Part shown: positions 8,120-57,016 of the stretch, one piece after another
Numbering within the stretch: the first letter of the stretch is position 1
Layout: every line of letters begins with the position of its first letter
NCBI RefSeq assembly: GCF_964204645.1
Contig: NC_134033.1
Span: forward strand, 266,031 to 330,030
Length of the DNA stretch: 64,000 nucleotides
Origin: Tubulanus polymorphus
Taxonomy: Eukaryota; Animalia; Nemertea
Direction of reading: 5' to 3'
Position numbers and translations under genes: made by a program
Notes under the pieces: generated by a model
What the model was told of the DNA's origin: nothing
The model's input: the letters and a program-made list of their open reading frames with translations, nothing else
Database searches by the model: none

Positions 8120-8847
8120 CTGGTAATTCATAAGTCCGTTTCCGTGTCCGCTACTTCAACGTCTCACATCGAGGATCAATAATGTTAATTTGATTTTGAC
8201 TTGAGTTCGATGGTCCGGTCCATGAGTCCGAATATCAATTCAATTTAAACTTTGTTGGAGTCATCAATTAAATAAAATTAAATTTATTCGTTATCAACCT
8301 CTGAAAGATCGTCAATAAATTGGAACGAAAGAAAGATGGGAAAACCGACAACTGTGTCAGATAGCGGTAATATCACCGAGTTCTGTTTGTCGTAATCAGT
8401 GACAGTGTAATCGCTGCTGACCTAATTCCCGATGGTAGTAATCAGCTGATCAGCTGATCAGTTGACGAAGTCGAATAGCTGCCTGATCACATGATTTTTC
8501 GAGTCTTAAACGAGTAAATTTCTTCAACGGTTTTAACAATAAAAGGTACGTGGTGTAAAATAATCGTGTCCTGAGTCTGTGTCAATAGACCTGTCACTGG
8601 CCGGGTCGAGAGTCTGGAGGAGGGACCAGGCAGGGGGGCGTAACTATCAGTCAGCTGTTCTTCTTTTCAGCTGCCCGCCTGCTGCCCCTAGGCCACCCCT
8701 ACCCCTCACAGCCACCCCACCCCAGCCCCTCGGCCATACCAAACCAACCCCTCACAGCCACCCCAGCCACTCGGCCATACCAACCCCTTAATCTCCTTGT
8801 CGTCAGTTGTAACTATTTTGTTGTGATTTATATTTTATAGATTGATA

Positions 8848-36978: not shown

Positions 36979-39900
36979 ATGAAGATGAAGAACTGGACCT
37001 GTTTGTTAATTCTACTGCTGACAATCAAGTTTTATTCAGAAGCTGCATCGGTACGAAATAAGAGAAATACCGGTGAGTTTAAATGATGTGTCTATACTGG
37101 TATCAACCATCACTAGGCGGTTACCAGAATTCAATTTCAATTTTGAAAAAACTGCTCAAGGCATCTGGACAGTGTGAATGTATTACCGGGTACAAGAATA
37201 TTACGTATATTGTGTATTTGATATTTCAGCACCTGATGGAGTTGTACTGGACAGTGTGAATGTATTACCGGGTACAAGAATATTACGTATATTGTGTATT
37301 TGATATTTCAGCACCTGATGGAGTTGTACTGGACAGTGTGAATGTATTACCGGGTACAAGAATATTACGTATATTGTGTATTTGATATTTCAGCACCTGA
37401 TGGAGCTGTACTGGACAGTGTGAATGTATTACCGGGTACAAGAATATTACGTATATTGTGTATTTGATATTTCAGCACCTGATGGAGTTGTACTGGACAG
37501 TGTGAATGTATTACCGGTTACAAGAATATTACGTATATTGTGTATTTGATATTTCAGCACGTGATGTAGTTGTACTGGACAGTGTGAATGTATTACCGGG
37601 TACAAGAATATTACGTATATTGTGTATTTGATATTTCAGCACCTGATGGAGTTGTACTGGTCAGTGTGAATGTATTACCGGGTACAAGAATATTACGTAT
37701 ATCGTGTATTTGATATTTCAGCACCTGATGGAGTTGTACTGGTCAGTGTGAATGTATTACCGGGTACAAGAATATTACGTATATTGTGTATTTGATATTT
37801 CAGCACCTGATGGAGTTGTACTGGTCAGTGTGAATGTATTACCGGGTACAAGAATATTACGTATATTGTGTATTTGATATTTCAGCACCTGATGGAGTTG
37901 TACTGGTCAGTGTGAATGTATTACCGGGTACAAGAATATTACGTATATTGTGTATTTGATATTTCAGCACCTGATGGAGTTGTACTGGACAGTGTGAATG
38001 TATTACCGGGTACACGTGTATTACTGTCGCAGGAAGGCAAAAATGTTAGTATTACCTGTAAACAGAGCAGCTCTACAGCGACTGGTGTAGAATTCCAGCT
38101 ACAAGTGAACAGTGGAGCAGGAGGGGCCTGGACTCCAATACCGCTCGGTGTATCGAAGTTGTGGAAAATTTTACCTGAGGCTGGTAAAATGTATAAATGT
38201 GTGGCCACTAATTCAGCCGGAAGGAAAGAAAGTAAAATCTACCAATCAGATGTAATCAGTGAGTATAGCGGGAACCTCGTAAATCAGTTTGTCATTAGAT
38301 AATCATTTTTTTCTTCAAAATTCGACTGAACCTAATTTAAATATTGCGGAAAGAAAATATGATGAAATAGATTACTGTCTTAGCTGAATTTCCGTCATAT
38401 ATACTTGCAAAAACCTGTGGAAACAACAGCAAGGCCTGGTTCCACAGTTGTGAGGTAAAGAGTTAACTCCGAGTTAAAGTTAGTTCATTTTCAGTGTTTT
38501 AATTAAGACTCTTTTAACTTAAGTCAAATTCCACAATTTCCACAATTTCGACTTAAGTCAGTTTCCACAACTGTGGAACTGGATCATGAGTTTTAAACCA
38601 GAAGTCAAATTTTACAATTTCTTTTATACATGTATGAATATTATCAAAAATTCATAAAGAGGATTTATCTTAGATATGATGCGTTATGTGATATCTCTAG
38701 AACCCAGTGATACCATGTGGGATCTCGGTAGAATTAGATTTAGCCTGTGCCCTCTACTGGGGCGGTAAACTGGTTACAGATCCTATAGTTACCGTAGAGA
38801 ACAATGCTAATAAATGAGAAAAAAATACGTTCCTCAGCTACGAGTATTTATTACACTCCAACCATTTCCACGGTATATGGAGGAAAAAATAGTATTCAGA
38901 ATTATTTACAAAACAGAAAATAAAATCAACTTGAACCGAAACAAACTTTATTCTTAACGTTGTATTTACGATTTATACTATTGGAGGGATTTCACATCTA
39001 GACCTAATTTGATAAATTTATTCAGATTTAAAGTTGAATTTTTTAATCCAAGGTTCCTAAAAGGGTTTAAATTTAAGTAAATTTTACGAGATTCGGTGAG
39101 TTACTAATATGAAATACGCCACGCAATCGATAGAAACTGGAACTATGATTGTGCTGGGGTTGCAATGTTAACTATTTGTAAATACACTTGTTACGGACCC
39201 AAAAATCTGAGGTCAAAATATAAACACAATCGACCTGATTACAGAGGAATTCAAACATTTCCCGTCCACCACCAATTATAGTATGATTTTCTTTATAGGT
39301 ATAAACATAAATGAAAACCCGTGTAAGATGGCTCAATTCCAATCGCTGACTTGTACTTGTAAAGCCATTAGTAAAATCGGTAATCCAAACATAACAGTTA
39401 AATGGTTTGCTGATGGATTTTCTGAAGGTGAAACTGATTTTTATGAGATTACTAAAAAACATGACGTAAATACTCCGCTAAAAGATGGAGTTATCAACAG
39501 GATTCAGAAAGATTTTCGTCTCTTGATGCACGCGACATTGACTCAATGTCGTTTGTGGGAGTATAATGGGATAAAACTACTGGAACCACCTCACAATCAA
39601 ATACAACATCAAACTCCAATGGATGTTACGTGTAAGTTGAATAAACATTGTTTTGTATTTGTTGCCCTGAGCATAGGACATTCTATTGTTAATACCACAG
39701 TTAGAGATTTAGGAGTTACTTGGATAACACTTTTACAACGACGGCTGATCGTCTCTGAGTTTCTTTCGTTTCGATATTTGGTCGCAATGAATAAATTTGC
39801 TTGTATTTATTTGCTTTGTGAAAATTTTCGAAAATCAATGAACAAATGTTTTTCGAAAATCAATGAACAAATGTTGTTGACGTGATAAGGTTCTAGACTG

Positions 39901-42900
39901 ATCAGTAAAATTGTGAAAAGAAATTAAATAATATATACATATAATCAATGATAAATCAAATCAATAATGATTAAATATGTAACAAATTCTATCCATTAAA
40001 TACATTTACATCTTTTTCTTTCAGATTTTCCTGTTGAAATTCTGACGAACGATAATTATACGGGAAAACCTGACATTAGAACACCAGGAGAAATTGTAGA
40101 ATATACTTGTAGAACAGTTGAAGGGAGGCCCGATCCTACAGTGATATACCAGCAGAAGAGAAAAGGTTCTGAACAATGGCAGCCAATTCCTGATCCACAA
40201 CCTCTTAAAGTACCTCACAAAGGGGGTTTTAACACGACCTACAAGTTTAAAGCTGATTTCAAACTGCACAATGGAACCTCATTTCGATGCGCTGTAAAGG
40301 AGAACCTTACGTTTCCAGAACCTCAGCAATTCAATCCAATCATCGTTTATTGTAAGTAACAGATTTATTTTTCTGAAATATCTTCCATAGAAATTGGCTT
40401 TGGGTTTGAGCGATGGTACAAACCTCTTGTCGTAGTAGATCTATGATCTACCCTGAACATGTCACGATGACATCAGGTTCGAATCCCTCCCGATGGATGA
40501 TGGGTCTACTATGTCAGGGTTTCAGAAACCTTAAAAACTTTTAACTTTTGCTTTTATCAGATTTTGCACCAGATTTCAAGAAAGACGGTGAAAATGAAAC
40601 ACACGCGGCGTATATTGTAACAGTTAATAGTAACCTATTGACTCAACAAGTTACATGTGACCCTCCAGCTGTCGTTCAGAAACTATCAAACTCTCAGTGG
40701 AATATAACCATACCTATCCTAAACAGTATGGTAACTGACTATAGAGGGCGCTGTTTGGCTGACGGTATTAATGAAAGGGCCATTTATGTCGCTCGTTATC
40801 ATAACGCCGGTCCAACTGATAAACCAGGTAAGATTCCGGGTCAGAACTGGATAAGTTTTATCTGAATCTGAACAACTGCTCGAAGTCATCTCCTCTTGAC
40901 CTGATGAATTGCTTCAGTCGTCATCGGAAAATTAATTATATTCAACTGAGGTCATCTCTATTTTTTGAGTTTCAAGATATTTGTGATTTAATTGACTAAG
41001 TGTAACCTATGTGTTAAAAAGTCTTATCTGAACTAGAATTCAGATCAGTTATTTTTTTCATTTTATCACGTGTCACATTTGAAATGTACCACATATATTT
41101 GATATATGCAATATTCAAAATGCTGTAACTTCTATTTAGACGCCAGTTAACCCCTGAACACGTGTTTGTTATTTCAATTGCTGATTTATTGAAATTGTAG
41201 TTGTCGATGGATGGAATGGAATAAAAGTGGCTGGTGTTGTAATCGGTATATTGATATTACTGATTCTGATTGTACTGTTTATTCTGTGGCGTCGTGGCTG
41301 CTGTAAGTTTTACATAAAACCATCATTTAATCTGAAGAAAACAATAATTTAACCATGAACGAAGTCAAAACGGAACGTGATATTCCTAAATGAACAGTAG
41401 TAGAATTGATATTGAAACAAGCAGTATTTCTGATTTTAGACACTTGGGACTTTAGTCCCAGCGGGCTATCGCGTTCATTTGTCGCCCGTCCACCCGTCCG
41501 TTCGTAGACAGAATCCAGTAATTTTTGAAGACGCTGTTTTACACATATTTCAAGTTTTCGAGGGAAATTTTGAAGACGCTTTTATTATCTTGATCATATG
41601 TATTTGTATCCCCCCAGGGCCCATCAGCATAAGAAAAAAAGGGTCAAATGGACACAAGATGACCGTCCTGTGACTTTTTTGTGCCCAAAAATGTCATCTG
41701 GTTTGTAATTTTTCATTTAAATTTGTGCTGGCTATTCTGTGGATTGGAATCTTCAATAGCTGGTACAGGTATTTTTCATCAGCCAATTATGACGCAATTG
41801 GCGGCCATCTTGGTGTCATTAGTACTCATTCGTAGGTGGGAAAAAGTTTTTCCACATTATATTGATACCTAAGCGTATTTTGTTCCAACAATCAATTGCA
41901 AAATTGTAACTCATGTCATCGTCTATGATTGTGGTGAGTTTCAAGGTCATAAGTTATTCTATACGGTTACCAGGGGGCGTTGAATATCGAAATTGTTAGG
42001 TTGTTGAGCATTTGAAACCACTTTCCAAGCAAATGGTGTCCCTGAACCCCTAGTTTAATTTACAGTCACGTGTTTGGATCCGAAACCTAAAGATGTGATT
42101 GAATTGTTGCGTTGGACAAGTGAAACCTGGTATGAAAAAGGTAAGATTCTCTCACATGATTTACTGCACATATTCTCAGATATCGGTTTGATAATTTTAG
42201 GTGTTTTTTTTTTCTTTGCAGATCATGAAAATTGGGTGAAAACACGTGACCGACCGCAGCCAGGTATTTATAGAATTATCAACCTTTTGATACTTAAAGA
42301 TATTTTAATTAAACGAAGTTCATTAGTAAATCCATATAAAATGTTACTCGATATTTTCTATACTGTGATTTTGCTGTTTTATTTTACTTCCATCTATAAG
42401 TTTTGATAATCTCTGAGCGAATGATGTATTTTTAATATAATTCTAACTCTTGAGACTGAATGTCTGTGATATTCTCAGATCATCGCTAAACAGTAATCGG
42501 ACACTTCATTCCTAGACTATTCATTTATTTTCTGTCAGATAACGATTATTTTTTGTTGTACTTTTCTTCTCATCAGATCTCATCCACTGATGCAATCAAT
42601 CATGCAATGTTGCTCATAATTCGAAATCATATCAAATAGATAATTATCCATTTAAAAACATAACAGAATTATAAGATCAGTTAATTATCACATATAAATT
42701 CGGCGGCCATCTTAGAGTCATCAGTCCTCGCTCATAAGTGAAAGAGTTTTTTTGAGGAAAATATCAACAGGTTTTTAATTTATAGTCTTGATATAAGATT
42801 ATTATTAGCACTTTAAGAGGATACGTCTCCTCACGTGAAATTGAGTTATCCGGTTGTCTATTCTAGCCACCAGGGGGAGTTGATTATTGAATCATATACG

Positions 42901-45900
42901 AATTATTTATTGGGATATTTTATCACAATCAATCGCAAACTTATAATTGTTGTGATTTTAATTTTTTGCTCGAGAAAATATAACTTAAAATTGTTCATTC
43001 ATCAAAAACTTGATTGTTTGTGACGCCAATGTCTTCATTTGAAAGCCAATTAATTATAAACAACTTTTTTATAGAAACTGTTAGAATAATAAAAGATGTT
43101 TACGGAACCGAGAATGATTGGGAGTTAACGAGAGATAAGGATAAACAAGGTAAGAGTAGTGACTGGTAAGAGAAGTGAGTGGTAAGAGTAGTGAGGGGTA
43201 AGAGTAGTGACTGGTAAGAGTAGTAAATGGTAAGAGAAGTGAGTGGTAAGAGTAGTGAGGGGTAAGAGTAGTGACTGGTAAGAGTAGTAAATGGTAAGAG
43301 AAGTGAGTGGTAAGAGTAGTGAGAGGTAAGAGGAGTGAGTGGTAAGAGTAGTGAGTGGTAAGATGAGTGAGAGGTAAGAGGAGTGAGAGGTAAGAGTAGT
43401 GAGTGGTAAGAGGAGTGAGTGGTAAGAGTAGTGAGGGGTAAGAGTAGTAAGAGGTTTAGAGTAGTGAGTGGTAAGAGGAGTGAGTGGTAAGAGGAGTGAG
43501 AGGTAAGAGGAGTGAGTGGTAAGAGGAGTGAGTGGTAAGAGGAGTGAGAGGTAAGAGGAGTGAGTGGTAAGAGGAGTGAGTGGTAAGAGGAGTGAGTGGT
43601 AAGAGGAGTGAGAGGTAAGAGGAGTGAGAGGTAAGAGGAGTGAGTGGTATGAGTAGTGAGGGGTAAGAGTAGTGACTGGTAAGAGTAGTAAATGGTAAGA
43701 GAAGTGAGTGGTAAGAGTAGTGAGTGGTAAGAGGAGTGATATAAACAATTCACAATTGAACAAATACTTTTTATATTTCATTTCAGAAAAAGGTATCAAA
43801 GAATCCGCGTTCCAACAGTTATCACGTGATCAAAGTAAGCTATAGTTTGTGTTAGTTTAAGTTCATGTACATGATTACATGCACATGTCACATAAGTGTA
43901 CATGCACATGTTTGTATTGTTTAAATGTACATATATCAGTTATGTGTGAATTCATACATGTCAGTAACATGTGAATGTGAGTTCAATTAACACGAGTTTA
44001 ATCAATATATTTTCAGACATGTTAGATTTGGTCAAAGAAATTCTAAGTAAGTTCAAGATATGACTCGGTATTTCCTCTTCAACTCGAATCTTGGATTCAA
44101 ATGTGTTTATAATTATCTATTGACAGGAAAATACTTTAGAATAAACAATTTAGAAACGAAACTATCAAATGATATCGGTAAGATTTGATTGAATACAGTT
44201 ATTGATGTATGAGTTTATTGATTATTATTCTACTGTCAACTCATTTTGTAAATGTATTACAGATACATTACTGAACAAGAAGAGGTCAATAGATGGCGCT
44301 GATGCAGTTTACAATAGAGATGAAGGTAAGTTATTATCATACACTGTTCATAGACGAAATCAATTATTCTGCTTTACTGATTAAAATGAAGCAAATCTCA
44401 TTCAAGATGGCCGCTGGGCCGCCTTTTGGCAATGTTAAAGAGGCCTATACCGATTCTGGAAAACCTTTCTGGGGGTTTCGTTTCAACCAAAATACTTCGT
44501 ATACATTCCGGAATAGTGTAATCCGTAAACCGGATTGAAGTGACCGGTTAAGAATTTGTAATCTGGAATTGATATTCCTAAACCTGAATATTTACAATCA
44601 AAACCTGTTTTGTTGCAATTTCTGGTCTAAATTCCGCATTTCATACATCGAATTTGAGATGTTTTACTCACGCGTGCCAGAATATCACTAATTCAACAGT
44701 TGTTAATAATCCATCCTTGGATTAAACAGAACTAATATAGGTACATTCAAACTCTTATTATTGTTATATGCTGATGATACGGTTATACTCGCCGAGACGC
44801 CAGAAGGACTTCAATGTGCCCTTGATAATATTTCTAATTACTGTCATGTAATGCATATCGGAATTAATTATGAAAAAACGAAAATTGTCGTCTTTAGAAA
44901 AGCTGTCAATGTAAGAAACTTTGTTTGGAAGATTGATGGACAAGTAATAGAAAGTGTAAACTGTTTTACATACTTAGGTATGGATTTCAATTTCAATGGA
45001 AAACATAATGTAACTATCAACAGTCTGGCTTCTCGGGGAGTATCAGCATAATATAATTTCAGAAAATACCTTCTGCAGTATCCAAAAGTCACACCCAGGC
45101 TAGCCATTAAATTTTTTAACAGCCTCGTGGTACCTGTCTTAACTTATGGCTGCCAAAATATGGGGTTTCAAAGAACAAAGAAAACTAGAGAGAATCCCTC
45201 TCAAATTTTATAAATACCTCCTGGGAGTTAAAAACTCAACACCTGATAACTTTGTATTTAGTGAAATTGGTAAATATCCAACACATATTCAGCAAAGAAT
45301 GTTAATTGTGAAATATTGGCTTAATATACATAAAACTAAACCCGAGAAACTAACTAAGCTGATGTACAATCAAATGTTAGATGATATCATACGTGATCAC
45401 CGTGTAATTAATAAGCTTCTTTGGTTAGAGATCTATTGAATGGCCTAGGATATGTGGAATCTATGTGGAAAGGCTTTCAATCGCCTTTGGTATATATTAT
45501 GTATTCAATGTATTTATATACTTGAATTATTTACCCGCCATACATTATCATGTAATTGTGTCATATCATTAAAAAAAATTATATTTTTTTGATATAATAA
45601 ACTAATAAATTAATATAAATCCCACAATGAGAAAGAAAAATTAGTCCGACTTACAACAACAAAATTAAAACAAAGAGCAAAGAGACTAATTGAGATATGA
45701 TATTGATTTCAATTGAACTAATTTCATCTTAATTTCTTTAATTCAGATGAAGCACATGTTAGTTTTATAACGCAATTGAATGAAGAGAAAAGACCCCTGA
45801 CAGACAAAGAGAAACAGTTCATCACAGATGGTCAGTAAAACTATGAATTATAACATAGTCTTACATTTTGAAAAAGGTGCTTCCTTTCTGAAGAGAAGCC

Positions 45901-48900
45901 ATTGCAAATAATAGAAGCCTTTGAAAATAATGTAGTTTCTTGTGAGTTTCAGATCCCCAGTAAACAGTTATAATGATGAATTTATACATTTTCAGTTGGT
46001 TCAGCAGTTGAGACTATTGTTGATTTGTTTGCTAAAATGTCCGGTAGGTTCCATAAATCATTTCAGTAAAAATACTGTGGAGTTTGTTGTGGAATCATTG
46101 AATAATTGATTGTGTTTATTTTTAATGTAGATGCTGAATTATGTGAACGAGGAATATTGAACATAAAACGTAGGTTCTAATTATCATTAATCCGTAACAG
46201 TTCACACCGTTGTTTTCACCGCTACTAAATAAGATAATTTTGAGATCTCCACGGTCGATACTTGGAGTATCCGAAAACCCGACAAAACCAACACTAAACA
46301 AGTCAGATCAAAAATATCTACGTTATAATCATTGCCAAAGATTCACTATTGTAATTATCATATTTAAACTACAAAAAATAACATAAACAATAACATAAAA
46401 ACCCACTATGTACAAATTAAAAGAGTTTTTAAAATCGAGAATTTATTTATTCAAACAATCTAAAATATAAGAACACGATGTTTCAATCTCACACAAGTGT
46501 GACGATGATCTCTAGTGTGAGATCGAAACGTCGTGTATTTCATATTCTAGATTGGTTGAATAAATAAATTCTAATAGATTAAGTTCACTGTACATTTATA
46601 TGTGAATTCTCTGTACATTAACATATGAGTTCGCTGTACATGTACATGTGAGTTCTCTGTAGTATTTGTAATTTATGTGCTAAACACTTTTTCTTTACAT
46701 TTCAGCTACTGTTGAAATTGCTGGTAAGTTATGATATTCACTATGATGTTTAAACTGATGCTGTTCAATTAAAACTGAAATATCCCTGTATCATTTTGTA
46801 GAAAACTATGTGCAAGAAATACTTAAAACAGAAGTCAAACAACAGAATGGTGAGTGTAATCTATCAGGGGGAGGGGGGAGGGGGTACTTACAACTGTAAA
46901 CTGACTACAAATTAAACACATTTTGATCAATTACAGGAAACCTCGTCACACAAATAGAAAACCAGAAAGTAACTGATGAAACAAAGACAGGTTTGTTGCA
47001 AGTTAATCTTATTATCATAATTTATCCATAATCGATTCAAATGTTAATAGTAAATTGTGTGTGATTTTTTGTCAACTGAAAAACTTAATATACAATTTTT
47101 CCCCGCAATGTCATTATGTCTGTTTTACAGAAATGAGAGTGGCTGACAGGAACCGTTCTGTAACAGTCAAATGTGGTAGGAATAAAAATGTTATCATTCG
47201 AAAATTATTTTAAAATGACAAATCGTTTTGTATAAATTGGTTCATCTTCTGAGGTTCAATAAAACCATCGGTGCCACCGATTGATGGGGAATATTTATAC
47301 GATCAAATTCATTCACTTCAATACGAGAAATGAAATATTAAATTCTAGTTTGAACTGATCCGGTCACTATTCATGTTATTCTATTCATATATTCATTTGT
47401 AGAATCAGTTTTATTGGCGTCAAGTTTGCAGAAATTAGAAGAGAACAAACATTCTACAGAACTAGATAAAAGTAAGTGTAAACTTTCTTTGTCCCTTGAG
47501 CTAAATTTAAAGAGTATTTGAGAGGCATCTGTTTTGATTCAGAACCAAGTTTTAAGTATTAAGAATGTAACTAGGTCACAGTTTGTATCGATGTGAATAT
47601 GTTTTGGACCGAGTTCATCTCAGATGATTGAAATCAGTTGTGTTTAAACACAAGAAAGTTACGCAGTATCATCGGTTCAAAATCAATCATAGCACTAGGA
47701 GCCGTCCCTTTCTCTAATGGATGGCTCCAAGAATATCCAAGAAAATCAAGCTGTATCATCGGTTCAATTGTCAGTCATCAAAAATCAATCATAGCGCGAA
47801 GACACCGTGTTTTGATTATCATATGCATATATCCAATAAAGGGTGGCTTCGACATATCCACATCACATCATCATAAGAGGATGGCTCCGTGTGGATTTCT
47901 GTCAAAATATTTTAATAAGGGAAATTATTTTCTGATTTGTTTATTTTGTTGTTCAACTGTTTTTTCAGGTATCTATGAAATAAGCCGAGATGTTTTAGGT
48001 AAGAACTAATTAGTAACAAACTATAAGTATGGTAGTTAAGGGTTAAAAGCAGAAGCTTACAAACCAATAACTAGCAGACTTTTATATCGCTAGTAGATGT
48101 AGCAAGCAATTTGTTGGATCAAATTTGTTTTCAGATATTTGAAAATTAAAAGTGTTGATGCCTCAGTATTGGATACCATGTTAGATTAAACCTAATAGTG
48201 ATTTGTGTTCTCTTTTTTCAGAGATCAAATTGAAAATTGCAGTTTTCAAATCTATCAAAGGTAAAAGAGGTCTTTATATATATTAGGCGAATTCACACGA
48301 CGGGCAAAAATTCCGTTCCAAGTTGGTCTGGTTCGAAATAGGTCCGGTCCAAATTTGGAACGGACTAAATCTGTATGGGGACAGAAACTGGTACCATGAA
48401 CCCATAAATCTATCATTTAGGTATGAACGCACTCAGATTTGGTCCGGTCCAAATTTGGACCGGACCAATGGTGCGGACCGGTTGTTTTCCATGATATTTT
48501 CTCGAATAATTTCTAGAATTGTACGCTGGGCGAGGTGAAAGATTTCAGAAACAACTCAAAGAGAAACTGAAACAAGAGGAAAATGAAGAGAGTAAAAATG
48601 AGGAGGAAATGAACAGAATAATTCACAGTTCAGTTTGTCAGGCGTTTAAATATATCACTGATATGGATGAAAGTAAATATCGATTTTATACATGTACTCA
48701 ACATGCACATGTAGTATTTTTACATGTTTCATATAGCAGGGATATGTTGTAACCATGTCAACCAATAAAAAGGGCATATATTCTTAATTCAGGGCGGAAA
48801 GGCATATCGGCAAAATTTTTGAAATTTTACAATCATTTTGGAGCTTTCTGAGCATCTCTGAGAGGCATTTAGTCAAGAAACATAGGTTATATATTTCGGA

Positions 48901-51900
48901 AAAATATCTATTGTGTATCTCAGGTGGTTACAACGGCAAATTTTGATACAGAGAAAAAAAATTCCGACCATATCGGGCAACACGGTGTAAATCAGCCCCT
49001 GTATGGGGACAAATGCTTAATGTAGTTTGATAAAACATGTTTATAGAGACATGTTCGTAAGTTATTCACATGCATTTCTATGTCACATGTTCTTGTCAAC
49101 GAACGAACGTCGAATGAATGTAACGATGATTTTTCATCACGGATTGATTTATTGCTGAATTCATGTTCAATTACTATTTGTAATTTCAGAGAAATTAAAG
49201 GAACGAGGAATCGTAGCTTATAGAAGTGAGTAACATTCATGTTTGAAGTTCAAAGTGCAAATTATATTCTACAAATAAATACGAGTTTTTTAGACTTAGA
49301 TTTAAATCAAAAGAAGTAAGAATTAGATATAGTTTAAGTTGACTGTACGAATAGACCTGCTTAGATTAACGCAATGTTAGAATTATTGTTGTTTTTTGTT
49401 TTTCAGTAAAAGATGAAACAGCGAGTAAGTACTGATAACAACTTACACGTTCGAGTCACATAAATAGATACGTGATATGTTATGAAGAGAAAAAACCCAC
49501 AATTAATATATATCTAAAATAAACTACTCTTGTTTATTCCTAATTTTTTGGGTGGAATACATCCACCAATCTTCAGAGTTTATTTGAAATATGGTTCAAT
49601 AGAAGGGAGTTGCCAAGTCACACCAGGATATTTAACAGAGAATAGGACAAAATTAGATGAAGGAAATGACGTAAGGGAAAAAACAAGAGTAGTTGTCTTA
49701 GATCTACGTATTGTGGGTTTTCCCTTCGTGACATTCAAGATTAAAAATAATCTCAACTATTTACAAATATATGTCTCAAATAATAGTGGTCCTTATTTAG
49801 TTCTAAATCCATCAACACTGTTCCGAGCAATCAACACTTAACTTTAGGAACTATTACTGTCATCAGGGTTTCGGCAAACAGTCAAGTGTTTGACTCGAAA
49901 TCAAAAGCAGCGACGTTGAACCTAAATAAACAAATCTCTGAAGATGGATAGTCTACAATTTCACTGACAGATTTTCCTCACTGGCCTTCAATATTACTGG
50001 CCTTTTATAAAACAGTAATGAATATTGATTTTCTACTAGTTAATCAACTGAATTCGTAGATGTGAAAGAAGAACATGTTTCCCTTTACCTACAGTTATCT
50101 AAAGTGTGTTTATTCTGTTTCAGTGAAGCAAATCAAACCAATTATTGCAGACAGAATCGAAACAGAATTTAAAGGTGAATAAAATGGACTTTGAGGTGTT
50201 TTGATTGAAAAATTAAAACGGTACTGAGTAAGGGTGAAGGTCAACCGGTACTGAGTAAGGGTGAAGGTCAACTGCATTTTGCTCTCCTAGTTCATGGAAA
50301 TTTATCAAAGTAGAAAATAATTCTACCGATCAAATAAGAAAGTAGCGGAATCACTTAAAAGAAATACCTTTGTACGTTGATTAATTCAATGGCAGATTTC
50401 AATTCAAAAACGAAAAACAAACTGTTATTATACTCGGCACGCCTGATGTGTATTTAGCCGAAATGTTGCTCAAAATATTCATTCTCGTCTTGATCGGGGA
50501 TGTAACAAAAATGAGGATCGATTTACCATCAATTGCATCGTTAAAGATTATATCACAATGTTAATTACTAATGTTAGTCAAATCTCGAATTCTAGATTAT
50601 ATTGTGGCATACAACATCGAGTTTGCATTTTCTAAATTTGTTTTTGCTCTCCTCATCAAATTAACTTTTATACATTATTTACATTTTTTGCAGAAAAATT
50701 AAAGACAGTTTTTGATGAGAAATATAAAAAGGCTCGCAGCAGTTCGTCACTCAAACACTGGACATACGATATATCTGGCGCGAGTAAGTTCACAGTGAAA
50801 TCAGTTTGTGATTTATAATAGAATTCTATTGTATAAAAACTCGTCTATTATTTATCACATATAGTGTCTGTACTCAGTGAATTAGCCGGTAAAACTCTAC
50901 AGACAAACACAGATTATTGGAAACGAGTCAAAGAATGTTTCGGTAAATAATAAATTCCTGTTTTACTTCGGAATTTTGTTCATGTTTTTTTTTAAATGAT
51001 TTAATTCTAAGTATTGAATACTAATTGTTTGTTTTGTTTGAATAGGAGATGAAATTAACAGTGAAACAAATAAAACTGAACTTGAAAAAATAGGTAAATA
51101 TCAATACAATAACAATTCATTATTCAATAATAAACAAAAATGTTGATTCAGAGTTAGTGGAGTTGGAACCAAATATGTAAAATCGCGGTACATTTTTAGC
51201 CCACTTGGAAGACAATTCCCAGCGGGCTATTGCGTTCACTATTCGTCCGTCGTCCGTTCGTTCATCCGTCCGTTCATCCGTCCGTAGACGGAATCCAGTT
51301 ATTTTGGGAAGTTTTGAAGACGCTTCAAGGTAACGTCTTGATATTTGTGTTACACCCTAGACACATCTTCAGCCCAAAAACTGGCCCTGTCAGATTCAAG
51401 ATGGCCGACTGGCAGCCATTGTTGTTTGCCAAAATCAGCACTTTTTACACATTTTCGAAGTTTTCGTGGGAAATTTTGAAGACGCTTTGATCAATTAGCT
51501 TGATCTTTCGGATATATTTGTAGCCCTCAAGGGCCCATCAACATAACAAAAATTGGGTCAATCGGACACAAGATGGCCATCCTATGACTTTTTTTGGCCA
51601 AAAATGCCAATTGTGACCTGAATTCTGAGTCCTGTAGCTACCTAATGGTTTGCCATTTGCAATTTGTGATCGGCATTCTTGGGAAAGGAATCTATAATAC
51701 CCGAGACAGGTATATTTGATCAGCAATTGGCGGCCATCTTGGTGTCATCAGTACTCATTCGTAGGTGGGAAAAGGTTTCAAAATCAATTGCAAAGCTGTA
51801 GCTCAATTAATTGTTAATTTTACTTTATTCAATTTTATTCTCTAAATTGCAAGGATTGAATCCAGTTTAATTTATTCATTTATTTATATATATTTTCAGT

Positions 51901-54900
51901 TGATGAGTGTTTGGATGAATGCATAAAAACAATGGGAAATGATAGTCATGGTGAGTACCTCACATGGGTACCTCACATGAAGGGTACACCTCATGTGTAT
52001 CCTCAAGGGTACATACATCTCATGAGTACCTCTCGTGAGAGGTACTCATGAGTACTTCTCATGAGTACCTCATATGCGTACTTCTTATGAGTACCCATCA
52101 TGGGGATACCTTGTAATATTAATTATTAGTACCTGATATAAGCTTCCTTGAAGTTGATTCAATGTAATGAATGAATTCTATTTTCAGGCGAATCATCAGA
52201 AATGGAAAGTCTCTTGAAAGAGGATTGGGGTAAGTAAATTATACAGTTGTCACTTTCAGATTCAAAATAGGTAAAATAGTTTGAGATAAAATTTATTGAT
52301 GCGATAAAGATGAAATTTAGTTTCATTTTCAGCCGAATTACATGTATGATAAAATGGATTAATTTGGATTACTGGGGACCTTTTTGTGATATAACTCATT
52401 CGCAAATTTAATGCAACAAGGCGCGCCGTTAAAGATTGAAATTTGCGGTAAAATTGTGAAATTTCCTGATATAAAGATCTGCATAGGGGACTCTAGAAAA
52501 CGTGTTTTGGAAGTTTGACTCGCAATTACTTAAAAACTAATAAAGATAATTGAAAACCGTAAAAAGCAAATAAGATTGATCCTGAAAACTCTGAAAATGG
52601 AGATAAATATTTGTAAGAATTACGAACTTTTGAGTGATTCATTTTCCATAGCATGATAAAGAAGGCACCCTACTAAATACTAATCCATCACACAAACTCT
52701 TCACTTATTGAGATTAATTTTTAAATATTACATTATTTCGGAGGATCCATTTTCTGTTCATTACACTATAGAATGTAATAATATTATATCATTATGGGAT
52801 GAGCAATAATTCAAGTTGAATTATCGGGAAGACTATATCAATGTTTATAACTTCACCAGCGCGCATTGTTGCATTAAATATATGAATGAGTTATATCATA
52901 AAAAAGTTAATTATCAGCTGAGTTCATCGATATTTTTACTTTGTTTCTATCTTAATCCAATCCAGAGATATGAACGAATTAAAAAAGATTAAAATGGGGA
53001 AAAAATTGGGACAAGAATTCAACAATAAGGACCCGGTGGGTAGCAAATAATGGCGCCTGGCAACTGTAAAAAGACTTATCGCGTCGCAACCGACTTACAC
53101 CCGGCTTAACATATTGAAAGAACGAATGAATTTATTTCTGAAAGAAGAAATCGAAGGAATTCTGTAAAATAATAATAATTTTCCCGCCTGATGTCATATC
53201 GGGATATCCCTTGACTTTTGCGCACCGATATGGCTGATCGGCCTTTCTAAAAAAAGTGATTCATACTCATTGAGAAGCGCCGCTACTTATTGTATTGTAT
53301 ATCCGAGGCCTAGAAACAATTTCTTGATGAAATCTAAATTAACAAAGTATATTTGGTTTACCTGCGCAAGGACATAAAACCGGCACTTCTTATGCGTGTA
53401 AGCAGCGAAGATTTGTGTTCAGAAAACCAGTTCATCGTGTATCACGTGACTAATACAGTTTTCCAATCCTCACTTCAAAAGTTAAGAACTAAATGAAATT
53501 AATTGTTGTCATCCGATTGACTCAAACTAAAATTCTGAGAAAGATGAGATTAATAAACATTTTGTGCTGTGCTGAAAATCGCAAGTTGATGCGCGGCGTA
53601 GTTTGCAGTATTTACTGCGGAGCTGTGATGATATCGCCCTCGTTTTAGTAACACGTGAAGCTCACCAAAATCAACGAAGCCGTTTATCTTTAGAATAAGT
53701 ATATTTTTAAAAAAAGGTGAAAAATCTGACTTTTTTAAAGGTGACTTTTGGAAATGTTTTCCTCGTGTAGATTGAAAATAAAGGATTTTTCCACTCGTGT
53801 AGATGGGACCTTGAATGTCTCTGATCGAACTTGTTGCTAACCCGACCCCACAGAAAGATTCTTTCTGGTGCATGTTTTGTCACCACAATTGCTAAGTTTT
53901 AGCTCACGGCATGATGTATGATTGTGGTGAGTTTCAGGTTTGTTGGTTTTTGTTTAAGGTCACTAGGGGGCGTTGAATAGCAAAATAACTCAGTGTTCCT
54001 TGGTACCTAGGCATATTTTTTAACTGCAGTCATTTTTGTGAAATTTTAGCTCATGACATTTTCTATGATTCTATGATTTTGAGGCAAAATCATCCACCAT
54101 AGAAATTGTAAAAAATCTCAAACTGATTTTATTTTCACAGATGTTGATCAAGTTCAGACGAGTCTGAAAGAAACGTATCAACAAATGATCGATGATGAAA
54201 ATTACAAAGAGGTTTGGTGGAGCGATGACGTCACCAATTTCAAAGACATCTTCACCAAAGAACACTCGAAAATTCGAGCCAAAAAAGGAAGTGAGAAGCA
54301 GTCATTGATTTTACCCGATGATTTCGAGAAACTTTTCACTAATAAAAAGCGTGCTATGAAACCCGTGTGCCTCGCGGGTGAACCCGGTATAGGTAAAACT
54401 ACTCAGATTGTTAATCAAGTGTTAACCTGGACAACATCAACAACGGAGTTTGTAGCAAAGTTTCCTATGTTATTCTATATACCGTTAAATGAACTGCCCG
54501 ATGATAACGCGTGTATTTATAAGTACATTTACGAACATCTTTTGAATCGAGTAATCGAAAAGGATCTGCTGATTGGTTTTGAGATATTCTTACGGGAAAA
54601 TGCAGAAAAATCGATATTTTTTCTAGACGGCTTCGACGAGTTGAAAAGCGATAAAGCGAAGGAATACATCATACACGTGACCAATAAATTACCGAAAGCG
54701 CATATCGTCATAACAACACGTGAGTCCGGGGGCAGCAAGATCGTCAATGATCCCAAATTCACTGTTGTATCGATATCCGGCTTCAAACGGGAAGAAGTCA
54801 TCGATATTATGAAGAGAAAATTCCCCAAGCGCGATCCATATCAGCTACTCGACAAGCTTGAAGACGCAGCGTCACCTTTATTTAACAGTATCTACTACAA

Positions 54901-57016
54901 CCCGCTGATACTTCTTATGTTTTGTTTTCTGTATATGGACGAGGAAGTAATTACGATACCATCAAAACTCACCGATATCTACATCGATTTGACATGTTTT
55001 CTGATCAATAAACGCGAGGGCTTCAGGTTATCGAAAGATTGTTTTTTCGACGACATCGGAAATTCTGAAGTGCTTAAAGTAATTTGTCAAGTCGCGTATG
55101 AGAGACTCATCGCGCATCAAAACAGCTTCACCGAAAATTATTTCAAACTCGACGAATCGAAGAGGACGGCTTTGACGTGTAAAGAGGTGTCGCCGCGACG
55201 GAAATCAGACCGCTCCGTCCAGCTACGGTTCATACACAAATCTGTGCACGAATTTCTGGCGGCGGTACACTCGGTCGTGCAATTCAACAACAGTGGTAAA
55301 ATACCCTGGAATAAATGCGCGTTTGAACAACTACAGGACGAACTTGTGAAATATGGTGAATTATACCCGAGATTCATGTCAGGGCTGCTGTATCGTTACA
55401 AGTATAACCGCGGCCTCGGTGAACTTTTCAATACTTTAATAAATGAACATTTAAAAGCAGTCACAATAATGGATAGGTTCGAGTCCTTGGTTACGTTTAC
55501 TAGGGAATGGGCAGATATGGCGCTCAACCCCGATTACGAACGCTACATCGAACTCCGATCCGAAAGAACTGTTTTATCTGATCAGTTATCTGATCAGTTG
55601 TCAATCTGCCTGAATGAAGCCGACTGGCCGGACGACGCCATTAGTGAAATAGTTCACTACATACAGAAAATGTTGTTCGTATCTGTATATAGCAGATCGC
55701 GGATAAACATGCTCGCAAAAATACTCGAACACAAACAATGTCAGATCGAGCTAGTTTACATAGAGGATTATAAGGAACTGGAACCCGACGAATGCCGCGT
55801 ATTAGAAACAGCCATAACGAGTAACACTAGTCTTCACGGTATGATAATAGATACAGACGTGTCATCAGTACGCGATCAGAACTTGACTATGTGTAAGAAG
55901 AGCAACAGTATAAACTGGTTTGTGCGGCGAGATAACGACACTGGTGAATGTTACAAGAAACTCGACAACGAATGGATTAAGACAAGTCACGTGATTGAAT
56001 CTAAAGATTACGCGCGGTTGATCAGTGGTGATACTAACACACACAATACAGTGGAGTTTCTGTTTATTAATACTAGAATTAGTGCGGAACGTTTAGGTAA
56101 TATTTTAGTCAATATTAAAAAATCGTATCCGTCCTTAAAACATCTATATCTCAGATTGCAGGAAGATCAGCTCGATAAAAATACAATCACAGGGCTGAAA
56201 AACATCATTCCGGGTTTGCAAAGCTTATATCTTGAAGTAATAATATGTTGTAAGATTTTGGTGATCGGTTCGGAGGAATGGAAAGATTTTAACAAAGCAT
56301 TAACAGATTCAGACATCGAAACATTTCAGTTCAAACTGCGTAAACGGCGCGGACTGAGCGGACCGTTCGGACTGAGCGAACTGCGCGAACATCGCGAACT
56401 GCTCGAACTGCGCGAACTGCTCGAACTGAACATACTGCGTGAACGACCCCAACTGCCCGAACTGCGCGAACTGGACGAACTGACGGCAGATCAACGTGCA
56501 GCAATCAGTGATAGCTTCGGTTCAATGCAGAAACTAAAACATCTTGTCATTTACGGAATTAATTCACAAATAAACGGCGTTCTAGTTCACCTGCCGCGGC
56601 TGACTGTGTTAGAAATAGTGTTGCATTCAGAAGCTGATGATGACGCACTTGCTCGGTATCTATCATCAGATGCGGTAAATCAGCTGATACAAGTCAGTAT
56701 TGATAGCCTTCTCGATAAACCGGAACAGAACAATCGCATCTTAAAACAACTAAATCACGTCTCATCAATTCGTTATTTGAAGTTTCGCGGTTTACTCCTA
56801 GCGCCGATTAATACACAGCACGAAATCGATTTATTCGTCAAATCAATCGTCGAATTAATCAATAATCTTCCGCATCTTTTTGACCTATATATCGGCTGCT
56901 GCAGCACCGACCCCGATACGACGAGAGATTACATCATATCAGAACTTAAAAAACTCAATAAAAGAGTGAGAGTAAAAATACGGGTCGGAGCATCTGAAGT
57001 TTCATCAGATTCATGA
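36979..57016 (+). CDS. Putative transmembrane Ig-NLR receptor, ~1855 aa, 31 coding exons: signal peptide (36979-37072), four Ig-like exons (37968-38258, 39299-39631, 40025-40351, 40561-40827), TM (41201-41302), 24 mini/microexons (42222-52229), NACHT-LRR exon (54141-57016)
   Basis: All 30 introns are GT..AG and phase 1, every internal exon length is a multiple of 3, and there is no stop between MKMKNWTCLLILLLTIKFYSEA and TGA 57016. TM is VAGVVIGILILLILIVLFILWRRGC. Confidence 0.75.
37165..38014. repeat. 82-bp minisatellite x10 spanning the acceptor of the first Ig exon
   Basis: ATTTCAG|CACCTGATGG at 37229, 37311 ... 37967. Confidence 0.95.
38432..38585. mobile_element. MITE, same family as 28320 and 33751
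   Basis: GGCCTGGTTCCACAGTTGTG...CACAACTGTGGAACTGGATC. Confidence 0.6.
41436..42060 (+). mobile_element. Non-autonomous Helentron/HINE-like element (intronic)
   Basis: 5' CCCAGCGGGCTA, TCCG-type microsatellite, CAAGATGGCC-type cores; homologous to 51195-51800 and 53910-53985. Confidence 0.55.
43145..43740. repeat. Purine-rich ~16-bp minisatellite (GAGTGGTAAGAGKAGT)
   Basis: Direct reading. Confidence 0.95.
44715..45470 (+). mobile_element. 5'-truncated, decayed non-LTR retrotransposon (RT C-terminal part) in an intron
   Basis: LLYADDTVILAE...LQCALD...INYEKTKIVVF...FTYLGMDF, then a stop and frameshift, then IWGF...KFYKYLLGV..STP...VFSEIG. Confidence 0.88.
46438..46573. mobile_element. Inverted-repeat Penelope-type terminus with a degenerate hammerhead core
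   Basis: ~57-bp imperfect arms; the + strand centre is gTGACGA T GATCTC tagtgt GAGATC GAAACGTC. Confidence 0.55.
48284..48482. mobile_element. Palindromic MITE fragment
   Basis: GGCGAATTCACACG start and internal TTGGTCCGGTCCAAATTTGGACCGGACCAA palindrome. Confidence 0.5.
51195..51805 (+). mobile_element. Non-autonomous Helentron/HINE-like element (intronic)
   Basis: Colinear homology with 41436-41910; CGTC/TCCG microsatellite. Confidence 0.6.
52380..52906. mobile_element. Non-autonomous DNA element with ~47-bp terminal inverted repeats
   Basis: CTTTTTGTGATATAACTCATTC..TTAATGCAACAAGGCGCGC versus GCGCGCATTGTTGCATTAA..GAATGAGTTATATCATAAAAAAG. Confidence 0.7.
54141..57016 (+). CDS. NACHT plus helical/winged-helix plus LRR-like terminal exon (NLR-type STAND ATPase)
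   Basis: Walker A GEPGIGKT, Walker B IFFLDGFDEL, sensor-1 IVITTR, NPLIL, FIHKSVHEFLAA, then LxxLxL repeats (LKHLYLR, LQSLYLE, LKHLVIY, LTVLEI, IRYLKF, LFDLYI). Acceptor TTTTCACAG at 54140 is in frame with the ORF. Confidence 0.93.

Follow-up and report, generated by a model that had tools for sequence, protein, structure and literature searches.

In the 64,000-nt window of Tubulanus polymorphus contig NC_134033.1 analysed here, a 10-kb segment very probably encodes the 26-exon tail by which a type-I Ig-superfamily receptor continues, on the cytoplasmic side, into a NACHT domain, its "linker" having been borrowed from a sister receptor family. Judged by homology, the stretch is the cytoplasmic tail of a T. 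polymorphus family of Ig-TM-tail receptors (uncharacterised LOC1419... proteins) with at least 17 loci. Exon for exon, the tail equals the C-terminal part of these paralogous loci, and in the window gene, as in a few of its relatives, the module-terminal exon is followed in phase 1 by one NACHT-LRR-like exon. An earlier note on this DNA had described 24 consecutive mini- and micro-exons that encode a linker of 426 codons. All 24 exons are real, but the true series comprises 26 exons (1428 nt, 476 codons), as one 75-nt exon (B) had been missed and another (A) was not listed (Table 1).

Table 1. Exons of the Ig-TM-tail-NACHT gene in the window (positions are those of the window).
Feature	Position	Strand	Remarks
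Ig-type ectodomain exons (4)	37968-38258, 39299-39631, 40025-40351, 40561-40827	+	AG/GT borders, multiples of 3, open, phase 1-1
TM exon, 102 nt	41201..41302	+	Phase 1-1; hydrophobic helix, then WRRGC
Tail exon A, 75 nt, juxtamembrane	42066..42140	+	Phase 1-1; acceptor ttaatttacag, donor gtaagat
e1, 42 nt	42222..42263	+	42-nt homologue with AG/GT in seven paralog loci
Tail exon B, 75 nt	43075..43149	+	Phase 1-1; acceptor ttttttatag, donor gtaagag
e2-e6	43787-43834, 44017-44046, 44127-44177, 44263-44325, 45747-45830	+	Splice sites and frame checked
e7-e11	45996-46043, 46131-46169, 46706-46723, 46802-46849, 46937-46990	+	Splice sites and frame checked
e12-e16	47131-47175, 47403-47471, 47969-47998, 48222-48260, 48517-48672	+	Splice sites and frame checked
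e17-e20	49190-49225, 49407-49424, 50124-50174, 50694-50783	+	Splice sites and frame checked
e21-e24	50865-50942, 51046-51093, 51900-51950, 52188-52229	+	Splice sites and frame checked
NACHT and weakly LRR-like C-terminus, single 3' exon	54141..57016	+	Entered in phase 1

The coordinates and reading frame proposed for the 24 exons withstood scrutiny of splice borders, frame and junction codons. Each is preceded by a pyrimidine tract and AG and followed by GT, measures 18-156 nt and is divisible by 3; offset 2 (phase 1) is the sole frame open across all of them, and no junction codon is a stop. With exons A and B included, tail exon lengths still span 18-156 nt, with a median of 48 nt and 17 of the 26 at or below 51 nt. 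Phase 1-1 is common to all 31 internal exons from Ig1 through e24 and is therefore not peculiar to the linker, the Ig and TM exons being 1-1 as well. It was also correctly pointed out that any tail exon can be skipped without a frameshift; the earlier note's own model had left out exon B unawares. A blind scan of the + strand between 42000 and 54140 for strong acceptor/donor pairs enclosing a multiple of 3 open in phase 1 returned 18 candidates, among them 15 of the 24 exons as well as exon B. Since the same scan yielded 0-4 candidates on the opposite strand and in two control regions (both strands), the exon series exceeds what chance would produce. One further candidate of the scan, 51361-51465, was discarded: it sits inside a dispersed repeat and is passed over by the RNA joint 51093>51900. 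Likewise, an extension of e13 to 47512 proved to come from the alignment running on into intron sequence (e14 has its 100% match at another place), and the alignment of a 15-aa cassette of paralog protein P0031 to 43026-43070 was spurious, this cassette being a separate 45-nt exon of paralogs that is absent here.

Exon A encodes ...LLRWTSETWYEK, which is common to the paralog proteins (86% to paralog G). Exon B, situated between e1 and e2, encodes ...VRIIKDVYGTENDWELTRDKDKQ (74% to paralog proteins) and aligns with conserved borders to all seven paralog loci of the C6 cluster. Exons A, e1, B and e2-e16 make up the stem of the tail, while e17-e24 are a single copy of a repeat module found two to three times in tail-only paralogs, e24 being a diverged version of the exon that ends the module (GELKKLGFLVEES type). 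A profile comparison of e8-e11 with e17-20 was merely suggestive (E 0.002, probability 14%). As the earlier note had it, the tail is predicted to be cytoplasmic, coming after the TM exon that ends in WRRGC and N-terminal to NACHT, to which RNA-like contigs join it.

The splicing of the distal part of the tail could be followed in X1, a sequencing run that behaves as RNA, with exon-peaked depth. Every junction from e16 to e24 is represented either by a GT..AG joint (48672>49190, 50174>50694, 51093>51900, 51950>52188) or by matching loose ends (junctions 17>18, 20>21, 21>22 and 24>NACHT), and 84% of the NACHT exon's sampled words were found in this run. For e1-e15 and exon B, inclusion in this gene is probable from homology. 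Some X1 contigs placed on the window derive from paralogs: across the e18>e19 junction, contigs and window disagree over the initial 8 nt of e19, and one contig carries an 18-nt exon of paralog C. The latter accounts for an apparent "alternative" 18-nt micro-exon between 49225 and 50124, which is the exon of paralog C and not an extra exon of this gene.

The tail marker exon e16 was located at 18 genomic sites, of which 15 fall in the C6 cluster at 21.7-22.8 Mb. Seven paralog loci contain colinear, AG/GT-bordered homologues of e1-e23, including both 18-nt exons. Exon lengths are equal across these loci except for one-codon differences that affect e12, e13, e19 and e23 in all loci or only in some (e12 measures 48 nt in the paralog loci and not 45; e13 is 66 nt in one locus). 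The alignment of protein P0032 to the window breaks at the exon borders for all of e2-e16 but e9 and e12, two exons without a separate P0032 match that have homologues in the P0045 sequence and in the paralog loci; e14 and e15 are 100% identical to P0032. Across 148 exon copies, no in-frame stop was found.

Family members combine these parts differently. Most of the at least 17 Ig-TM-tail loci are without NACHT and have the module two to three times, and the tail-only proteins P0031-P0043 lack NACHT as well. In three genes the module is kept once before NACHT. Locus G (C6:22.27 Mb) matches the window gene in its order of Ig, tail and NACHT, P0009 has the tail and NACHT in this order without the Ig part, and in P0007 and P0011 the Ig-TM part is joined to NACHT with almost no tail. 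Thus, the gain and loss of exons envisaged in the earlier note does occur between paralogs, by whole exon blocks, yet the number and order of e1-e23 are fixed across the seven loci. Variety in this family mainly reflects gene-level gain and loss of exon blocks, supplemented by a small number of single-cassette skips in NCBI isoforms of paralogs.

The whole protein has a size of ~1,900 residues as estimated from exon lengths. The four Ig exons (267-333 nt, each flanked by phase-1 introns) share 60-85% identity with paralog proteins at the N-terminus of the latter; Pfam matches remained under the gathering cut-offs both for a window ORF (Ig_2, E 0.0097) and for the paralogs (Ig_2 and C2-set_2, 3.5e-5 to 0.05). 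The 3' exon carries a NACHT domain (PF05729, E 1.2e-15, 58 bits versus a cut-off of 26.7) with the Walker A motif GEPGIGKT, and a C-terminus that matches LRR_14 under its cut-off (E 0.0019, 17.5 bits versus 40). With regard to divergence, pN was 0.08-0.12 in the tail versus up to 0.19 in Ig1-2, and pS was about 0.11 in the tail versus 0.09-0.31 across the Ig exons and 0.26 for NACHT, so that the tail exons are the least diverged part of the gene. Their dN/dS of 0.63-1.18 (near 0.8) nevertheless shows weak amino-acid constraint, which would suit a loose spacer no less than a scaffold. That the micro-exons show so little synonymous divergence, compared with introns and Ig exons, may point to gene conversion or to a densely packed splicing code.

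These data bear on whether the symmetric exons are used combinatorially, so that one gene would give rise to many linker isoforms for diversification in the style of schistosome micro-exon genes (MEGs). We judge this quite improbable, even though every tail exon is 1-1, which renders any subset frame-neutral, and NCBI isoforms of paralogs do skip, in frame, a 36-nt e17-type exon (two genes), four 45-nt cassettes, 6-7-aa exons, a 30-aa block and the TM exon (three genes). In the window gene all listed X1 joints for e16-e24 are consecutive, with no exon-skipping joint among them, although contigs can hide rare forms; the ten paralog genes examined have 2-4 annotated isoforms each, one cassette apart; and within the gene, synonymous and non-synonymous sites alike are best conserved in the tail. 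Hence, of the combinatorial isoforms suggested by the earlier note, single-cassette skipping in paralogs is what stands, whereas a special diversifying role of the segment is not supported, given the fixed e1-e23 series and its low divergence. More improbable still is that the tail and NACHT belong to separate genes and that their fusion represents read-through or a modelling artefact. Such a split could account for the NACHT exon's own in-frame ATG at 54185, for the unrelated short N-termini of some ten NACHT paralogs among the retrieved proteins, and for the closer similarity of the window NACHT to NACHT-only paralogs (76-81%) than to the NACHT of locus G (59-69%). Against it, X1 shows the loose end AAGAGGATTGG, identical to the last letters of e24, directly before 54140, and an X1 contig reads from the end of e24 into base 54141; the phases match, with junction codon GAT; neither a tail-type terminal exon nor a stop lies between 52229 and 54141; and locus G and P0009 share the tail-NACHT order.

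The tail, or its e17-e24 module, might instead be a novel folded helical effector or adaptor in the role of a CARD, PYD or death domain, e.g. if NACHT-fused and tail-only receptors bound each other homotypically. Its position N-terminal to NACHT, the two or three copies of the module in tail-only paralogs, its single copy ahead of NACHT in three genes, and the W, Y, C and G positions that are invariant across 17 module copies would all suit this reading, as would the AlphaFold2 model of the module, a bundle of five to six helices (pLDDT 56, pTM 0.39). For searches and structure predictions, annotated paralog proteins served as proxies for the window linker. Pfam found no family in the homologous tails of six paralog proteins, and thus none of the recognised NLR effector domains (CARD, PYD, death, BIR, TIR); an exhaustive HMMER search of 1.84 billion representatives returned no relatives beyond the receptor family, and the ESM Atlas no usable match. 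AlphaFold2 rendered the tail as an almost wholly helical chain at low confidence (a 623-aa paralog tail, at pLDDT 37, was left out of the fold search), and the best Foldseek match of the module model in the PDB had an E of 1.8 and a TM of 0.2, and none of the matches was similar to a death fold, HeLo, MLKL or gasdermin. The models are not confident enough for a fold to be assigned, a dN/dS near 0.8 also speaks against an effector domain, and the nearly tail-less P0007 and P0011 indicate that NACHT signalling need not depend on the tail. We consider a folded effector, the helical alternative raised in the earlier note, unlikely; the prediction is all-helical, at low confidence, and no fold matched.

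The borrowed receptor tail, which we favour, also has to be seen beside known exon arrays. In Ig-superfamily genes, the shared phase of 1-1 exons allows in-frame duplication, shuffling and skipping of domains or cassettes, and the PEVK region of titin is a length-tunable exon array, a spacer built from many short symmetric exons. Unlike in the classical Ig organisation or titin PEVK, the 1-1 rule here runs through 26 cytoplasmic exons into the NACHT exon. Schistosome MEGs resemble the tail in their runs of 10-20+ very short symmetric exons with longer introns between them, in being hard to annotate and in forming lineage-specific families (bioRxiv 10.1101/2023.06.21.545858). However, MEGs encode small secreted proteins with varied products from exons of mostly 6-81 nt (bioRxiv 10.1101/2023.06.21.545858), whereas the exons here are conserved between paralogs, form the cytoplasmic part of a far larger protein and show no skipping among the listed contig joints; besides, having most of the coding sequence in symmetric multiple-of-3 exons applies to the tail only. 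The likeness to MEGs drawn in the earlier note is therefore one of architecture and not of homology, the HMMER search having retrieved only family members.

Among NACHT proteins, the zebrafish NLR-B30.2 family is similar in that one large NACHT exon is preceded by small exons that each encode a short peptide, that repeat types have been shuffled from one NACHT group to another, and that the family is a lineage-specific expansion (Howe et al. 2016, PMC4852459). Its members are cytosolic proteins whose N-terminal repeats of ~30 aa come in one or two types each (Howe et al. 2016, PMC4852459), unlike the 26 mostly non-identical exons found here, whose tail descends from an Ig-TM receptor family, and we detected no sequence homology to them, no Fisna domain and no B30.2 domain. 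AjNLRC4 of Apostichopus japonicus, by description, is likewise a membrane receptor, with a TM helix, an Ig part outside the cell and a NACHT domain inside it (PMC8699970), yet it differs in having ~100 residues between the first TM helix (483-503) and NACHT (600-757), a second TM helix and no described micro-exon tail (PMC8699970).

As to the origin of the borrowed tail, its uniform phase would have been inherited from the 1-1 Ig exons, with the tail expanding by duplication of exon blocks. Because all exons are 1-1, the shuffling that made the fusion, the gains and losses of blocks and occasional in-frame cassette skipping would have been allowed. Functionally, the tail may act as an extended scaffold, helical for most of its length, that keeps the NACHT oligomerisation module beneath the membrane, "helical scaffold" being a statement on predicted secondary structure only, from two models of low confidence. 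Clustering of the Ig ectodomains may then drive NACHT assembly, or the tail may recruit tail-bearing partners. It is a long shot that the module represents a new homotypic signalling domain, through which tail-only and NACHT-fused receptors would co-assemble under the membrane as a surface-triggered NLR signalosome, with block gain and loss and the skipping of cassettes or the TM exon setting the coupling to NACHT.

The gene is a hard test case for annotation, with two 18-nt exons that are real and a 75-nt exon that even careful reading overlooked, without frame penalty. It offers a clear natural example, from an understudied phylum, of exon shuffling via uniform phase-1 introns, in which the tail of a surface Ig receptor, with its 26 micro- and mini-exons, has become attached to an immune NTPase that is normally cytosolic. 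Membrane receptors can thus acquire NLR-type modules by more than one route, and a family with tail-only, tail-plus-NACHT, nearly tail-less Ig-NACHT and Ig-less members provides a comparative test of what the tail does.

The 24 small exons (e1-e24, window positions 42222-52229) that the earlier note had described as a frame-symmetric, phase-1 series are real. In a sequence check, all 24 intervals were preceded by a pyrimidine-rich tract plus AG and followed by GT, each had a length divisible by three, and the sole frame open in all of them was offset-2 (phase 1), with no stop arising from the split codons at the tail junctions. The total of 24 exons and 426 aa, however, fell short: with two further exons, A and B (Table), the tail between the transmembrane (TM) exon and the NACHT exon (54141-57016) comprises 26 exons, 1428 nt and 476 codons, with a median exon length of 48 nt, 17 exons of ≤51 nt and four of ≤30 nt. 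The omission of exon B had cost no frame because this exon, too, is symmetric; B and its borders are conserved in all seven paralogous loci compared on C6 (the C6 loci). In a blind scan for strong acceptor/donor pairs 15-160 nt apart, with spacing a multiple of 3 and phase 1 open, the + strand of 42000-54140 yielded 18 candidates (15 listed exons and exon B among them), against none on the opposite strand and 3-4 on either strand of two control regions. The exon pattern is therefore not a product of chance.

Table. Tail exons added to the gene model and variable pieces in paralog isoforms
Feature	Position or genes	Strand	Description
Tail exon A	42066-42140	+	75 nt; encodes ...LLRWTSETWYEK; absent from the earlier list
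Tail exon B	43075-43149	+	75 nt; encodes ...DVYGTENDWELTRDKDKQ; between e1 and e2; absent from the earlier list
12-aa e17-type exon	two genes		skipped; NCBI isoforms
Four 15-aa cassettes			skipped; NCBI isoforms
Pieces of 6-7 aa and 30 aa			variable; NCBI isoforms
TM exon	three genes (P0051, P0057, P0060)		skipped in frame; NCBI isoforms
1-2-aa shifts			NCBI isoforms

Phase uniformity is not confined to the linker but characterises the entire gene: the TM exon and all four Ig exons are phase 1-1 as well, so that a single phase is common to all 31 internal exons. Exons of the Ig superfamily classically follow a uniform-phase rule, which this gene fits. Downstream, the ORF at 54185-57016 is a portion of the exon starting at 54141, which is preceded by ttttcacag and, like the tail exons, entered in phase 1; its product is a NACHT domain (PF05729, E 1.2e-15) with the Walker A motif GEPGIGKT, ending in a weakly LRR-like stretch. 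One reading frame encodes a signal/Ig ectodomain, the TM helix, the 476-residue tail, and NACHT with its LRR-like end.

Several repeats accompany this exon structure. A 16-bp unit, GGTAAGAGTAGTGAGT, occurs in ~37 copies at 43149-43739, in an array that starts exactly at the exon B donor and supplies 37 tandem donor-like sites; use of these decoys would usually shift the frame, 16 not being divisible by 3. The same array lies downstream of the exon B homologue in paralog A. An 82-bp tandem repeat at 37165-38014 (10.4 copies, 98% identical) includes in each copy the Ig1 exon acceptor and the first ~20 codons, every copy being matched by paralog proteins, and similar arrays are present in locus G of the C6 loci. 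Further upstream, an unrelated gene at 8842-11614 contains two ORFs with matches to Pfam DUF229 (E 1e-20 and 5e-95).

Besides, the 3' part of the tail is covered by reads. Words of the NACHT exon were present in four sequencing runs, X1 containing 84% of them, and X1 is RNA-like in that its depth peaks at exons and drops to ~0-7 in several intron bins. Within the range covered by the read evidence (48300-54299, e16 to the start of the NACHT exon), the GT..AG joints listed for X1 include 48672>49190, 50174>50694, 51093>51900 and 51950>52188; the junctions e17>e18, e18>e19, e20>e21 and e21>e22 appear as loose ends or short inserts, and AAGAGGATTGG, the end of e24, immediately precedes 54140. The e16-e24 model is therefore correct, and splicing connects the tail to NACHT, the RNA-like joints covering the last nine junctions of the gene (e16 to NACHT). 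Some X1 contigs at the window derive from paralogs, since one with a different 18-nt exon matches locus C exactly (a paralog C transcript) and those crossing e18>e19 mismatch the window within the first 8 nt of e19. None of the X1 joints listed for 48300-54299 skips an exon, although contigs are prone to lose rare forms. In the e22-e23 intron, a dispersed repeat (51100-51899) reaches very high depth in each of the four runs (maximum 4.8e5, in run X2) and shows many non-canonical joints.

All close protein matches are entries of the nemertean Tubulanus polymorphus annotated by NCBI as 'uncharacterized protein LOC1419...'. The NACHT exon retrieved 13 of them (54-76% identity), including P0009, whose 305-aa N-terminus matches e8, e13, e16, e17 and e20-e23. 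This N-terminus as query returned 13 further proteins (P0031-P0043), 12 of which lack NACHT and have a long tail behind an Ig ectodomain and TM helix; the thirteenth, P0043, has the same tail in an N-terminally shorter model. Alignment pieces between P0032 and the window break at the exon borders of the earlier note, with identities of 100% (e14, e15) and 90% (e16). At the DNA level, probes of exons plus 6 nt flanks identified colinear e1-e23 homologues in the seven C6 loci, with AG/GT borders and equal lengths, both 18-nt exons included, except for e12 (48 nt vs 45), e19 (48 vs 51), e23 (54 vs 51) and, in one locus, e13 (66 nt), all still multiples of 3; none of 148 paralog exon copies contains an in-frame stop. 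Copies of e16, the marker exon of the tail, are present at 18 sites of the 268-Mb assembly: 15 form a tandem cluster (C6:21.7-22.8 Mb), and the remainder lie at C6:18.07 Mb, on C19 and within the window itself (C9:266031-330030). NACHT exons occupy ~22 loci. The majority of tail genes lack NACHT and the majority of NACHT genes lack the tail, the N-termini of the latter being arrays of 21-32-aa peptide repeats. In P0001-P0006, P0008, P0010 and P0013 (C56, C6, C8, C32), these repeats are of the MAESNPGINAEN... type, in up to 7 copies and with copy numbers varying between isoforms, and form a second sort of small-exon array before the same NACHT exon.

Two portions make up the tail: exons A, e1, B and e2-e16 form a stem, and e17-e23, together with a terminal exon of the GELKKLGFLVEES type, form a module. 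In tail-only proteins the module occurs 2-3 times with a period of ~300 aa, and a 130-170-aa block follows their stem and also their module (hhalign E 3e-47). Exons e8-e11, which open the second half of the stem, weakly resemble e17-e20, with matching exon borders (E 0.002). Exon e16 of the window is joined directly to e17 across a 517-nt intron, as confirmed by X1, and the same holds for the homologues in P0009 and in locus G (C6:22.27 Mb). The latter region (G000:C6:22255001-22285000, loci L009-L011, minus strand) holds a second Ig-TM-tail-NACHT gene of the same exon order: Ig exons, with the Ig1-Ig2 block in three copies, the full e1-e23 series, a terminal exon and, ~2 kb further, a NACHT exon (59-69% identical to that of the window). 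Exon e24 shares its flank and first six bases with the module-terminal exon, of which it is a diverged copy, and in P0007 an e24-like exon directly precedes NACHT with almost no tail. Between e1 and B, a 45-nt cassette is intact in four paralogs, skipped in one NCBI isoform and absent from the window, as are the Cys-rich juxtamembrane cassettes of some paralogs. Given this presence and absence of blocks alongside a fixed core series, variety in exon content lies in whole blocks between genes; the proposed gain and loss of exons among paralogs thus holds for such blocks, but not for the core series, which is fixed across the seven C6 loci.

Substitution rates speak against the linker as the site where diversity arises, a role that the earlier note had suggested. 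Relative to seven paralogs, tail exons showed a pS of 0.07-0.15 (~0.11), a pN of 0.08-0.12 and a dN/dS of 0.63-1.18, against a pS of 0.09-0.31 and a pN of up to 0.19 for Ig exons, and a pS of 0.26 and a pN of 0.18 for NACHT compared with locus G (dN/dS 1.0 in its C-terminal part). No other part of the gene has diverged as little as the tail. Aligned intron positions differ by 0.17-0.20 from the paralog loci; the stronger conservation of synonymous tail sites suggests a splicing constraint on tiny exons, or could be due to gene conversion. Among the NCBI isoforms of ten tail paralogs, differences amount to single in-frame pieces (Table). Cassette skipping does happen in this family, yet the 2-4 annotated forms per gene do not amount to a combinatorial repertoire of the kind envisaged. 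The likeness to schistosome micro-exon genes extends to the symmetric micro-exon architecture and to nothing else.

Natural paralog proteins served as proxies for the window tail in fold predictions and searches. Pfam had no match on paralog tails, the ESM Atlas none for the tail, and only eight proteins, all fragments or members of the Ig-TM-tail family, emerged when 1.84 billion representatives were searched exhaustively with HMMER. AlphaFold2 predicted a 623-aa paralog tail (17 sequences) to be almost wholly helical at a pLDDT of 37, and the 138-aa P0009 module to form 5-6 helices (pLDDT 56, pTM 0.39; best Foldseek match in the PDB, E 1.8). The helical character proposed earlier is thus recovered, albeit at low confidence. 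These paralog-based models, which are too weak to exclude a fold, showed no likeness to death-fold, HeLo/MLKL or gasdermin domains.

Since positive residues follow the TM helix, tail and NACHT would lie in the cytoplasm. There, the tail may act as a long helical scaffold, also present in tail-only receptors, through which the NACHT oligomerisation module is held at the membrane, and clustering of the ectodomains could drive NACHT assembly; alternatively, contacts with tail-only receptors could be made through the module common to both. The gene probably originated by fusion, with a phase-1 NACHT exon placed after a module-terminal exon, which the uniform exon phase makes possible. The nearest precedents are the zebrafish NLR-B30.2 family, in which small exons before a large NACHT exon are shuffled among members (PMC4852459), and, for the Ig-TM-NACHT combination, sea-cucumber AjNLRC4 (PMC8699970). 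Within the family itself, skipping of the TM exon in P0051, P0057 and P0060 predicts receptor forms without a membrane anchor.
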